Source of the DNA: Hyaloraphidium curvatum SAG 235-1
Lineage: Eukaryota; Fungi; Monoblepharomycota
DNA length: 64,000 nt
Assembly (NCBI GenBank): GCA_025558095.1
Contig: JAIVFI010000007.1
Location: 496,001-560,000, forward strand
Reading direction: 5' to 3'
The position numbers were made by a program, and so were the translations under genes. Shown piece by piece: positions 40,110-45,287 of the stretch. How positions within the stretch are numbered: position 1 is the stretch's first letter; each line of letters opens with the position of its first letter. Below the pieces are notes generated by a model. The model was not told where the DNA came from, did not search any database, and saw nothing but the letters and a program-made list of their open reading frames with translations.

Positions 40110-40336
40110 CGCCGGGGGACGTTGATGATTTGTTTGCGCCGAAGCTCCGCCCCGATCGATTATCACTTCGAAGCTCGTCTGCCAGGATCGAAGTGCTTCT
40201 TCGCGAAGACATGCATTGCTCCAAACTCTACATCGCCTCGTCGCGTCCATCTATGCTTCTATGGATTCTCGTCGTCCCCGACGGCCGATCACATCTTCAC
40301 CGAAGGCGCTCCCTTGAACGAACCAACCCGAGCGGA

Positions 40337-43300
40337 TCACCTGCCCTGCTGAACGAGCCGCCCCAATGCCGCGAGCAGATCCTGCTGCCGCGCGGGCTTG
40401 GGAACAAAGTCGTTCATGCCGCTTTCCTGAGCACGCACCCGATCCCCGGCAAAGGCGTTGCCTGACAGCGCGCAGATGTAGATCGCATCGCCGGCGAGCT
40501 CGCGGATGCGCCTCGTCGCTTCGAACCCGTCCATCTCGGGCATCTGGAGGTCCATGAAGATGACCTCGTACTGCCTCCCGTCGTCCGCGGCACTCTGCAC
40601 CCTTTCGATCGCCTGGAATCCGTCGTTGGCAAAATCGTACTTCTGGTGCAAGCGCTGGAGCAGTTTGCCCGTCACTCTTTGGTTGATCAGGTTGTCCTCC
40701 ACCACGAGAACCCTGAAGACGGGCAGCTTGACGGGCCCGAGTTTCGTGTCCACAAAGATCTCGGCCGCGGCCGCAGGCCGTTTTGCGGGTTTCGAGGGGG
40801 ATGGCGTTTGACGGTCGGGTCCGGGCGCCGGCGACTCGAGCACCGTCGTCGCAGACAGGTTATGCGCCAGGGAAAAGTAGTCGCGCGGCTCCACGGCAGA
40901 CGCCCTCGGCGACGAGAGAGCTTCTAGTCCTGCCTGAGGAGTCCCAATGCCCGAAGGAGTTGTCAGGATGGTTGGCAGCGAGCTGTCCGAGGAGTCACCG
41001 ATCTCTTCCAACGACACGTCCGCCACGCGGGTCAGGCCACTCGTATCGGTAGTCGATGTTCGGAGGGGAGTCGCAGGCGACTTGACTGCTTCGACTTGGG
41101 CAGTGCCACCACCGGCATCCGTTGCCTCGAAAAAGACAGGCTTTGCACGCAGAACGTCGCGGACGTCCGCGACAGACAATGTGTCGTTCGGCAGCTCGTT
41201 GATGAAGCGCACGACCGCCGACATCTTGGCCGGTCGCAGGAGAACGGTCACCTCGTGCGCCTTGGTCAGGCGAAGCGACTTCCTGAACGTTTTGTGCGAC
41301 CCCGGTCCGCACAGGAGCAAACATCGTTTGGATAGTCCGCTCCTCAGAATGCACTTGAGAGCGCTGACCTCGTGCATGCATGTCCTGAAGTCCATCACGA
41401 GGGCCGAGACCGACTTGTCGGTCAGAAGGAAATCTCCCAGACTAGAGCATTCGATGATTGCAGCCGAATCCACCCCAAGCGCCTGCAACAGGTATCGCAG
41501 CGCGTCTCTGTTCAGGGGCCTATTGTCCACGATGGCGAACGAAATCGAGGACGGCGATCTCGAAAGCTCCAAAGGCTCCTGAACGGAGTCGGCCAGTTTT
41601 GCCTTGCCGGGAGAAAGGCGGTCGAGAAAGACCCGAAAGCAGAATGTTGCGCCCCGGTTCTCGAGCCGCGACAGGACCTCAAGGTCCTCTTCATGCATGC
41701 CCGCGCCATCCGAAAGCCACACGTCGCCACCCATTAGTGTCGTAAGCTTCTTTACGATGTTGAGGCCGAGCCCGGTGCCGCCGAAACGTCTCGTAATGCT
41801 CTCGTCCAGCTGTGCAAACTGCTTGAACAGCTTCTCCTTGTGCTCGTGCGAGACGCCAACGCCCGTGTCGCGGACAGCGCCCTCCACCAAGATACGCGTA
41901 GGGTCGTCTGCCGGGACACTCGTTCGCAGGATCAACACGACGTCGCCTTCCAGAGGCGTGAATTTGATCGCATTGTTGAGGAGCTGTGAATGACAATTAA
42001 ACGAAATTCACGGCAAGTAAAGGACCGGAGACTCACGTTGACCAAGATCTGCCGAAACCGCGTGACATCTCCGGCCGCCACTCGCGTCTCCGGCTCCTCG
42101 AACAGATACGCTGCGAATCTAAGTCAACAAAGGGAGACCAGGCCGAGCGAGAACCCCACCATTGATCTGCGGGCCGTCCTTGGAAGCCGCCGTGGACACG
42201 ATCTCGATTGCCAGATCCATGGCTTCCCGGATCGCAAATGGCCGCTTCTCCAACGCCAGCGAGCTCGACTCGTACTTGGAGAAATCCAGAATGTTCGACA
42301 CGATCTGCAACAGAAGGTCGCCGCTTTGCTTGATGATTGTGACAAGCTCCTGCGCCTCGGCGAACTCTGCGTCATCTTCGTTCTCCGCATTGGCAAAGAA
42401 GCCATCGAGCAGGATCCCGGAAAGAGCGGTGACGGCATACAGCGGTGCTTGCAGCAACCCGATCAGACGACCTTTGAAGTTTTGCTCTGCAAATGCACTT
42501 ACTTCTCAGCTCGTGAGAAACGATCGTGAGGAAGTTGCGATGCTCCGCCGCCACCTCGATCTCCTTCCGCGCCGCCAACAGCAATTCGTTTTGTTGCTTC
42601 AGATTTTCCATCTAAAGAAGCATGTCAAACGTCGTCCAGCATTGTCAACCAACCTGACGTACCCGAAGCCGATCGACTTCGATTGCGTTGGCTGCAACGG
42701 AAGGTAAGAACAATGATGAACGCAATTCGAGCTCGTCACCTTGATTCAGGGCGATACCGATTTGCTCCGCAGTGTCGGTGACCAGGCTCGCGGCAAACTC
42801 CACCCTCTCGGGCAGATTGTCCTTGTCCGGTCCCGGATCCTGAATGTGCAGGACAAGAAGGCCCCATTCCGACGCATCCATACGATCGTTCGAGGTCTTC
42901 GATGTGCTCTCCCCCACTGTCGCGTTCTGATCCGCACCAGGCGTACCTGCCGGAGTCGTTCCCGGTGACCCAGAGGTCGCGAACCCAGCATCGGAGGCCG
43001 TCGGAAGGGGGAAGCGAATCATGATGACAGCCCCGATATCATCCATGGGCCCGAGGCGATGTCGGACCCGCTGGTGCGGATGTTCGTGTCCGATCTCCAC
43101 AGCAGTGAAGATCTCGCGCATGGCCTCCGAATCGCGATCCGTGAATAAGGTGATGCATTTCGACGTCTCCAAGGCGACGGCGATTGGAGCGACCCGCGTG
43201 TCCAGATCGTGGAAAGGCAGCTTCTCCACGCCATTCGAATACTCAGCGAAGAGAGACATTTTTGTTTCCTGGAAGCTCGGAAGATAGATGAGGCAACGCC

Positions 43301-44309
43301 CTCCGTACCGGCCCTCCGGCTGGGCCATCCATGGAGAATCGCCGTCCGGTCCATACTGGTCCGCGTCCAAGTACTCTTCCAGCAAGCGGGCACTCGCATC
43401 CAACGGGTTTTCGGCAGCGTCTGGAGAGCCGGGCGCAGCGAATACAGAACCGTCCTCGCCCAGCTCCGAAGGAGGTTTGGAAAACAGGTCTCGCTTCAAG
43501 AGAGCCCTTCCAATCTCCCTCGCAGAGATCCGCAGAATCGCGGCCCGCGCGAGCGTTCTGCGAATCTTGATGATGATGTGGCGGAGCAGTACGAGAGAAT
43601 CGCTCTGGTACCGAAGCGATCGTTCCGACAAATGCTTCTTTGCCAGTTCGTTCTCCAACCTGTCGTGCGAGCACTGTGAGGAAGAGATGCGACTGCAACG
43701 GATCATGACCTACGCCTGAATGAATCTGGGAATCATGACGGCCTTTGGGGCCAGGCGAATAAGCACGTACGCGGTGTAAAGGCTCACAATGCTCGTCAAG
43801 ATCTTCGAGACGTTGAGGAGAACGAACGTCCAGTGATAGAACGGTACGAAGGCGCCGATGAAATGGGTCGTGCCGCAGAGGAGGATGAACTGAACGGTGG
43901 CAGATCAGAGGCGCGACGGTAGGTAACGCGTGTAGAAGGAACTCACGGCGACGAAGAGATGCACCACAGACTCCACCGGCAGGTGGGTCTGCGCTTGCTT
44001 CATGAACCAGAACATGCTCAGCGGGATGCTGAAGTAGGCCAGGGCGATGCCAAAGTCTGTAGTGAAGGAGCAAGGTTGAAGCGTAGTCGGCGCGGACGGA
44101 AGACCACGGCTCTCACCACTGACGGCGCTCACGACCTTCCCCGCACCGCTCATGGGCAGGCACGGCTGTGATGTGCCACCATAGAATGATGAGTCCCGTA
44201 CGGGTGGAGGGGCCGGGGCCTCGTTTCGGGCGACAATGGCAGCGCCCCCCACGGAGGTTGCACCAGCGACGCACAGAGCCGCAAGCGCCAGATGGCCCCA
44301 GCGCTTCAT
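40337..44309 (-). CDS. Ethylene-receptor-like hybrid histidine kinase (signal segment, ETR1-type 3-TM ethylene-binding domain, GAF, HisKA, HATPase, pseudo-receiver, receiver)
   Basis: Spliced: SDFGIALAYFSIPL..FVA|FILLCGTTHFI..SKILTSIVS; GAF IRRTLARAAIL..TAEQIGIALNQ; SHELR|TPL; LLNNAIKFT; DTGVG; GGTGLGL; VEDNLINQ..IFMDLQMPEMDG..VPKP. Confidence 0.92.
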
Positions 44310-44512
44310 TGCCAGCGACTCAGAGGCTCGATACTCCTCGGAAACCACCGGTTTCCGCTGGAAGGGAATGGTCGGCGGGTGATAGCTTCCGTATGTTTAC
44401 GAGAGGCTTTTGGCGTCGGCGGGCCCGACCGACCGATGACATGACATCAACCTGCGAAATACAACTCGTTCAGAATTGCCGGCAGAAGATTGATGCGGAA
44501 AACGTACAACAT

Positions 44513-45287
44513 TCAATCTGCGGAACCGTTCTCCCCTACTTCGCCGCCTGACGCGTCATTCGGTTCCGGTTCCTGCTTAACAGCTGAGGAGGCAGGTCTG
44601 CGGGAGCGACCCTTGTTCGAGCGATCTCCCGGCCCCGATTGCTTCAAATTGTCAAGAAAGGTCTCCATAACGGCTTCATAGTCATCGAAGCCGAGCTGTC
44701 CCATAGCCCATAACACGTCCTCGCCCGTCAAGGCCTTTCGGTCTTCCGACAAACAGTGCTCCGCGGCTGGAAAGAGACATCGATCAGACCGTCACCATCG
44801 CACAATCTCAAAGCAGGTCACCTTCGCTCGTAATGAAGCTGATGAACTCGCTCGCACACTCCAAGATGCTGTCCTTGGCGTCCTTGGCGATCTTTGCGGT
44901 TTCCGGCAGCACCGACTTGATGATCCTGGACACGTTCGCGTCCGGGAGGAATCGATCGTGCTCCTTGACATCCTTTCCGTCGTCCTCCTCGCTAGCCACA
45001 GCCGACGCGCTCCCGGAACGATCTCTCCGCTGCCGCCTCGGCGGTCCCGAGGAAGCAGACGCGTCGCTCGCGTCGTAATCGTCGTCCGCTCCATCGTCCT
45101 CGCTTTTTGGTGCCCACTCCTCGTCATCCGCGGCATCGGGAGCCAGTTTGGAGACGGAAACGGGGGTCGCAGTGGGGATCGTCACCTTCCCCTTGCGCGC
45201 TGCGGGACGCGTCCGCGGGCTCCCATCGGTCTCATCGACATCCTTAGAAGGTTCAGGTTCTTTTCCGCCGCGTTTCCGACCCGACAT
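44513..45287 (-). CDS. Histone-fold protein, NF-YB/Hap3-like
   Basis: [46 protein letters not shown]|[30 protein letters not shown]. Confidence 0.85.

Follow-up and report, generated by a model that had tools for sequence, protein, structure and literature searches.

The output of plant ethylene receptors runs through CTR1 and EIN2 and is mostly independent of their histidine kinase activity. Outside plants, homologues of these receptors are known from sequence. In early-diverging fungi they have been reported from Rhizophagus, Conidiobolus, Catenaria, Gonapodya, Basidiobolus, Spizellomyces, Allomyces and Rozella (Hérivaux et al. 2017, mBio, PMC5285503), where they represent both plant subfamily types (with and without an extra N-terminal helix), are mostly full hybrid kinases and are reported to retain the crucial ethylene-binding residues. 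Kabbara et al. 2018 (PMC6324907) extended the homologues to Capsaspora, Acanthamoeba and a diatom, as group XVIII. The succession of kinase, pseudo-receiver and receiver is likewise well known, both from ShkA of Caulobacter, whose pseudo-receiver controls the access of the true receiver to the kinase (PMC6969517, PMC12632262), and from the receiver-like domain of the plant cytokinin receptors AHK2-4 (PMC10779265). Here we describe a gene of Hyaloraphidium curvatum SAG 235-1, located in a 64,000-nucleotide stretch of its genome (assembly GCA_025558095.1, contig JAIVFI010000007.1, positions 496,001 to 560,000; hereafter the window), which appears to be an additional member of the published group of early-diverging fungal ethylene-receptor homologues, with GpHHK2 of Gonapodya prolifera as its apparent published counterpart.

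Judged from its sequence, the encoded protein has all the parts of a phosphorelay-competent hybrid kinase: it carries the features that define a hybrid histidine kinase of the HisKA family, namely the H box, the N, G1, F and G2 boxes and a complete receiver quintet. In our estimation it is rather likely that this membrane-bound ethylene-receptor homologue signals ethylene by a His-Asp relay, without CTR1, EIN2 or EIN3, and with a pseudo-receiver as regulatory module. The transmembrane domain would bind ethylene via Cu(I) held by Cys106 and His110, and binding would alter autophosphorylation at His509. The phosphoryl group would then pass from Asp1111 to the single Ypd1-like Hpt protein and on to Skn7-like or Ssk1-like regulators, the CTR1/EIN2/EIN3 branch not being involved. 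The pseudo-receiver would most likely be an internal regulatory or docking module that governs the access of the true receiver to the kinase, as in ShkA.

Binding domain, kinase core and receiver on one transcript

The gene lies on the minus strand, as do all features described below, and comprises nine exons between an ATG at 44309 and a stop codon at 40337-40339. Its structure was read from one 4,658-nt contig of a public run (X1, recorded as "RNA?" and kept as contigs), the only public run containing this stretch; the transcript evidence is an assembled contig rather than a single molecule. The contig matches the window with no mismatches and skips eight introns of 48-60 nt. Since these skipped stretches read CT..AC on the plus strand, and hence GT..AG on the minus strand, X1 derives from RNA and the gene model follows directly. 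Exons 1 to 9 occupy 44451-44117 (with the ATG inside), 44056-43947, 43889-43714, 43659-42740, 42691-42663, 42611-42503, 42447-42160, 42110-42037 and 41983-40219 (with the stop inside). The coding sequence of 3,546 nt (1,181 aa) keeps a single reading frame across all nine exons, and its ends are exactly those (40337-44309) given in a preliminary description made from the DNA letters. The possibility raised there, that the binding-domain and kinase exons belong to separate transcripts, falls away, both sets being present on the one RNA contig.

The ethylene-binding domain, with three transmembrane helices, spans residues 65-159 over three exons (43716-44117), as delimited by Pfam ETR1_N and by alignment. 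Homology searches of the window protein were run exon by exon; even so divided, exon 2 (E 8.2e-7, 29.6 bits) and exon 3 (E 1.5e-10, 41.7 bits) each exceed the curated cut-off of 27 bits for ETR1_N (PF25487), and the uninterrupted orthologue P0001 scores 82.8 bits. Alignment with bacterial and orthologous binding domains places Asp65, Tyr72, Ile103, Cys106 and His110 at the positions of ETR1 D25, Y32, I62, C65 and H69. ETR1_N had no match in any of 14 control genomes, the copy described here is the only one in this 31.9-Mb genome, and no PDB entry matched the binding-domain exon.

Ahead of this domain, translation and hydropathy outline a start codon and signal-like segment (residues 1-27; 44229-44309). 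The N-terminal MKRWGHLALAALCVAGATSVGGAAIVA is hydrophobic, residues 1-27 being basic at first and then hydrophobic, and both closest orthologues likewise open with a hydrophobic, signal-like stretch. The signal-like N-terminus with a Cys some 15 aa upstream of the first transmembrane helix, proposed from the DNA letters, is thus borne out, with Cys50 standing 15 residues ahead of Asp65. We rejected Cys50 as a generally conserved dimer disulfide, because the same segment of both close orthologues lacks the Cys. The Asp65 codon itself is split (G|AC) by an in-frame, stop-free intron of 60 nt (44057-44116), which is removed in the RNA (joint 44056/44117). Introns 1-5 (42612-44116) measure 60, 57, 54, 48 and 51 nt, each divisible by three, and retention of the first would insert 20 residues directly before the Asp of helix 1.

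The kinase core begins with a linker helix and the DHp/HisKA domain in exons 5-7 (42161-42689), identified by the HisKA profile and the H box, with the phospho-acceptor His509 in SHELRTPL. On the spliced exons this box reads SHELR|T|PL, the Thr codon being split by an intron. The catalytic ATP-binding domain follows in exon 8 and the start of exon 9 (41624-42108), identified by HATPase_c (E 7.9e-14) and by kinase matches in the PDB; its boxes read LLNNAIKFT (N), DTGVGV (G1), FKQFAQ (F) and GGTGLGL (G2). The complete set of H, N, G1, F and G2 boxes that had been claimed for this gene is therefore present on the spliced exons. These motifs bear on whether the kinase might nevertheless be catalytically silent and signal through protein-protein contacts, like plant subfamily II. 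The weak HisKA match (25 bits for exon 7 alone, against a cut-off of 26.9, on a split exon) would suit such a protein, as would the established large independence of plant receptor output from His-kinase activity. Set against this are the intact five boxes and receiver quintet, the 70-83% identity of the DHp exons to those of the orthologues, and the lack of any match to a CTR1-type partner domain in the genome (a search made without a positive control), so that we regard a silent kinase as very improbable.

At the C-terminus, Response_reg (E 3.8e-23) and alignment define a canonical receiver (40349-40720) with Glu1062-Asp1063, the phospho-acceptor Asp1111, Ser1140 and Lys1162; the receivers of Sln1 and ShkA are among its best PDB matches. 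It is preceded by a linker of 155 aa (40733-41197) that is 34% Ser, Thr and Pro, as seen in composition and pairwise alignments. A Ser/Thr/Pro linker leading into a canonical receiver had been described from the DNA letters, and these results agree with it. All three orthologues keep the linker motifs SSDSSLPT..TTPSG.GTPQ.G.E and DYFSL, the linker (L004:8973-9416 and L005:4010-4387 in the relatives) being otherwise variable. The conserved motifs could possibly be phosphorylation or docking sites.

Between the binding domain and the kinase core lies exon 4 (306 aa; 42741-43658), a coiled coil and GAF-like region delimited by orthologue alignment and composition, with a long helix at its start and WGLLVLH...AEQIGIALNQ at its end. 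The preliminary description had placed here a GAF region collinear with ETR1 and interrupted by two low-complexity inserts. The inserts are real: they occupy exon-4 residues 61-118 (43305-43478) and 223-262 (42873-42992), vary among the orthologues, and consist to 69-80% of Ser, Thr, Pro, Gly, Ala, Asp and Glu, versus 43% in the remaining exon. The collinearity also holds by eye. When the exon ends are set beside AtETR1, KIRRTLARAAILRISAREIGRAL lines up with a 23-residue AtETR1 stretch; here, as for GpHHK2 and Rozella RaHHK2 below, the comparison was made by eye from Text S1 of PMC5285503. The GAF fold, the remaining part of that claim, was confirmed by no tool. Pfam gave no GAF match to exon 4 even at E 10, AlphaFold2 with a three-sequence alignment reached a predicted local distance difference test score (pLDDT) of 35, and hhalign against a six-sequence GAF alignment gave a probability below 1%, with and without the inserts. 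The sole signal from sequence consisted of marginal matches of both exon ends (E 0.038 and 0.055) to 8k9o_A, a PDB chain of 194 aa whose deposited name is "histidine kinase". In an ESM Atlas feature search GAF clusters ranked no higher than 20 and 24. The predicted order of secondary-structure elements is compatible with GAF, and exon 4 is likely, as far as its sequence indicates, to encode a GAF domain.

Exon 4 is conserved at 48-52% among the orthologues, and the GAF-like exon is therefore under constraint. This constraint would be expected if, with the same architecture and phosphorelay, the GAF-like region were the real input and the transmembrane domain were not an ethylene reporter in this organism, sensing instead another small hydrophobic or copper-dependent cue or acting mainly as a copper-loaded membrane anchor. 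Thousands of bacterial kinases have ETR1_N fused to PAS or GAF sensors (3,264 matches), and a response to light as well as to ethylene is reported for cyanobacterial receptors (cited in PMC6324907). We nonetheless consider a non-ethylene input unlikely, given that every ETR1 ethylene-binding residue checked is retained in the window protein and that fungal homologues are reported to have the crucial residues (PMC5285503).

The receiver-like domain between kinase and receiver

A degenerate receiver with a Lys to Arg exchange had been noted between the kinase and the canonical receiver, and structural comparison upholds it. The domain comprises residues ~780-895 (41198-41545) and was delimited with AlphaFold2, Foldseek, VIA-align and hhalign. 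Modelled by AlphaFold2 from the three-orthologue alignment, it adopts the (beta-alpha)5 topology (pLDDT 81.7; predicted template-modelling score 0.78). The best 50 Foldseek matches of this model are all receiver domains (TM-score 0.55-0.66), and VIA-align against solved receivers yields Z 12-13 over 115-122 residues. With hhalign, 14 canonical receivers align in register (E 1.2e-4, probability 55%), so that IVDN coincides with the acidic pair and VMDF with the acceptor Asp. Pfam gave no receiver match to these residues even at E 10. The quintet of the window protein is Asp786-Asn787 / Asp831 / Gly859 / Arg883 in place of DD / D / T / K, while that of its two relatives is DD / D / T or S / R, so that Lys is replaced by Arg in all three orthologues. 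By its modelled structure the middle domain is a pseudo-receiver, having a CheY-like fold from which quintet residues have been lost. The three-orthologue alignment holds 34 invariant columns, including the Asp and the Arg-Pro. No paralogue of the domain was found in this genome, where matches to the last exon cover only its residues 1-108 and 334-545.

The retained residues raise the alternative of a working second receiver, whose Asp831 would take up phosphate, serving as an internal sink or as a second step of the relay. In its favour, none of the three orthologues departs from Asp at the acceptor position, DD and Thr/Ser persist in the two relatives, the exchange of Lys for Arg is conservative, and GpHHK2 and RaHHK2 have Lys-Pro at the beta5 position by eye. 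Of the five catalytic-pocket residues, however, three are missing from the window protein (D to N, T to G and K to R), and the silence of the Pfam receiver model even at E 10, like the modest hhalign probability, also argues against a functional pocket. We judge a second working receiver improbable.

The preliminary description had presented the pseudo-receiver as an addition. It is not peculiar to this gene, since the same block is visible by eye in the published GpHHK2, and a receiver-like block lies between kinase and receiver in RaHHK2. Besides the window protein and its two syntenic relatives, Gonapodya and Rozella thus show the domain as well, by eye. The new element may be that a receiver-fold domain invisible to Pfam is here recognised between the kinase and the receiver of this fungal receptor lineage, a domain that would bear on construct design and on mechanistic models of these fungal proteins. 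A more ambitious proposal, to which we give little credence at present, is that the pseudo-receiver is an ancient, conserved part of one fungal receptor lineage and works as a ShkA-like gate whose second input is a metabolite or the phosphorylation of conserved motifs in the Ser/Thr/Pro linker. If this were true, the receptor would combine two inputs and feed them into a His-Asp relay independent of CTR1.

In Text S1 of PMC5285503, Catenaria CaHHK6 and CaHHK7 have, as read by eye, a long block that separates the ATP-binding domain from the receiver and ends in ..V(S/A)RPFKQ(S/T)HL(F/Y)R(I/V)LD, and this end resembles the Arg-Pro beta5 motif of the window pseudo-receiver. To go by such sequences, pseudo-receivers that lack annotation could be widespread among fungal hybrid kinases. 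The Hyaloraphidium genome encodes another hybrid kinase (G000:C20:411515-412315), with two tandem, Pfam-detectable receivers in one open frame.

Orthologues, genomic setting and relay components

A phmmer search with exon 4 against 1.84 billion representatives returned two fragments only, P0001 and P0002, and no plant or other fungal receptor at E 0.001. Word-based searches for plant and fungal receptors likewise returned only bacterial and cyanobacterial proteins. P0001 and P0002 are encoded on eukaryotic contigs that come from two further sequencing runs, where both are collinear with the whole window protein, pseudo-receiver included, and where the gene order eRF3, NF-YB-like, receptor gene, ZPR1 and RAI1 is shared. 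From this conserved synteny and full-length collinearity it follows that the receptor gene is no contaminant and has been vertically inherited in its lineage. The closest matches of the neighbouring eRF3 are chytrid proteins, at ~55% identity, which points to an early-diverging fungus. Intron positions vary among the three orthologues (L004:6001-9821 and L005:1260-4918 for the relatives): L004 reads straight through where the window gene has introns 2 and 3, and in L005 at least three further interruptions occur, of which one falls in the ATP-binding domain and two fall in the receiver.

At its 3' side, the RNA contig covers the stop codon and at least 118 nt of 3' untranslated region (40219-40339), ending at 40219 and continuing as adapter sequence. 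On the 5' side it continues from 44451 to 44508 onward, which defines a leader intron of 56 nt (44452-44507; GT..AG, gtacgt...cag). This intron begins 6 nt past the stop codon (44513-44515) of the upstream NF-YB/NC2-beta-like gene. That the receptor contig runs into this neighbour means one of three things: a read-through or bicistronic transcript, a promoter within the neighbour, or an assembly merge of overlapping untranslated regions.

The genome was searched for the components that a relay from this receptor would use, as the preliminary description had suggested. A single Ypd1-like Hpt locus (C22:402932-403243) was found, with the motif GHFLKGSSAALG, alongside ~25 or more HisKA loci. In a Skn7-like gene, an HSF DNA-binding domain is followed ~0.8 kb downstream by a receiver on the same strand. 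The genome also has three or more copper P1B-ATPases. Two loci with the HSF domain (G000:C44:237315-237545 and G000:C47:78965-79195) have identical scores and open-frame lengths, which suggests a recent duplication or an uncollapsed haplotig. As for the plant branch, neither the EIN3 DNA-binding domain nor the EDR1/CTR1 N-terminal domain gave a match in the genome; both searches lacked a positive control and are weak evidence of absence.

A receptor feeding a His-Asp relay rather than CTR1/EIN2 is plausible and would fit this gene content, and the idea follows naturally from the published fungal homologues. Several points nevertheless weigh against the ethylene relay with a regulatory pseudo-receiver that we prefer. 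Our literature search found no biochemical or functional data on early-diverging fungal ethylene-receptor homologues. The negatives for the plant branch cover EIN3 and CTR1 and are uncontrolled, as just stated. The GAF fold of exon 4 was left unconfirmed by Pfam, AlphaFold2 and hhalign. GpHHK2 and RaHHK2 were called orthologues by eye, on the supplementary sequences. The pseudo-receiver retains the acceptor-position Asp831, and in the orthologues also DD and Thr/Ser, which would make its phosphorylation possible. Finally, the analogy with ShkA is one of architecture and fold only, with no ligand of the pseudo-receiver indicated, and the proposed gating role is drawn from fold and position alone. 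The value of the locus lies in its combination of an RNA-backed exon structure, intact kinase boxes and one candidate Hpt partner, with nothing detected of the plant CTR1/EIN3 branch. It is thereby a clean candidate for asking whether the ancestral eukaryotic output of the ethylene-binding domain was a plain phosphorelay.

Comparison with fungal, plant and bacterial systems

The preliminary description had presented the gene as a mixture of plant subfamily I and II traits. As a novelty this mixture does not stand, as both types have already been published in early-diverging fungi (PMC5285503). Exact peptides of the window protein do not occur in Text S1 of that paper, and the protein is therefore outside the 2017 set. 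Its likeness to GpHHK2 extends, by eye, along the whole length, with the parts in the same order: a hydrophobic N-terminus, a Cys ~16 residues before the Asp, the binding domain, a GAF-like core of GRCLVYLP type, SHEMRTPLYAVTALS at the H box, the kinase core, a receiver-like block (..IIDMRT..IMILCNP..MATKP..) after the kinase, a Ser/Pro-rich linker with DYFSF (hence DYFS(F/L) across the compared proteins), and a canonical receiver ending in ..GMNDFVPKPA. The Gonapodya protein differs in its far longer extracellular N-terminal extension and in having Lys-Pro at the position that is Arg-Pro in the window protein and in both of its closest orthologues.

Among plant receptors, Arabidopsis ETR1 (subfamily I) shares the binding-domain residues, a coiled coil leading into a region at the GAF position, an intact kinase and a C-terminal receiver, and its GAF-position pattern ..IR.TL.R..IL.....E.GR.L matches the window protein by eye. 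ETR1 has no signal-like segment, GAF inserts, pseudo-receiver or long linker, and is 738 aa long versus 1,181 aa. Its ATP-binding domain (4pl9) matches that of the window protein with E 1.6e-9, compared with E 6e-15 for generic kinases, so that ETR1 is no better a match than these. Plant subfamily II (ETR2, ERS2 and EIN4) has in common with the window protein the extra hydrophobic segment ahead of the binding domain; the kinases of subfamily II lack catalytic motifs, whereas the window protein has all boxes.

Bacterial and cyanobacterial hybrid kinases with ETR1_N (for example P0003) have binding domains 37-49% identical to that of the orthologue P0001 and share the kinase and receiver output. 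They differ in having PAS or GAF domains, or no spacer, after the binding domain, and they possess neither the signal-like segment nor the pseudo-receiver. The closest parallel for the C-terminal half is Caulobacter ShkA (6qrj, 6qrl), which has the same order of DHp, ATP-binding domain, pseudo-receiver, linker and receiver. ShkA (6qrj) is indeed the best PDB sequence match of the C-terminal exon, and its Rec1 is among the fold matches of the pseudo-receiver, the two pseudo-receivers having a common fold and little shared sequence. In contrast to ShkA, which is cytosolic and gated by c-di-GMP, the window protein has no evident ligand site and a far longer, disordered linker.

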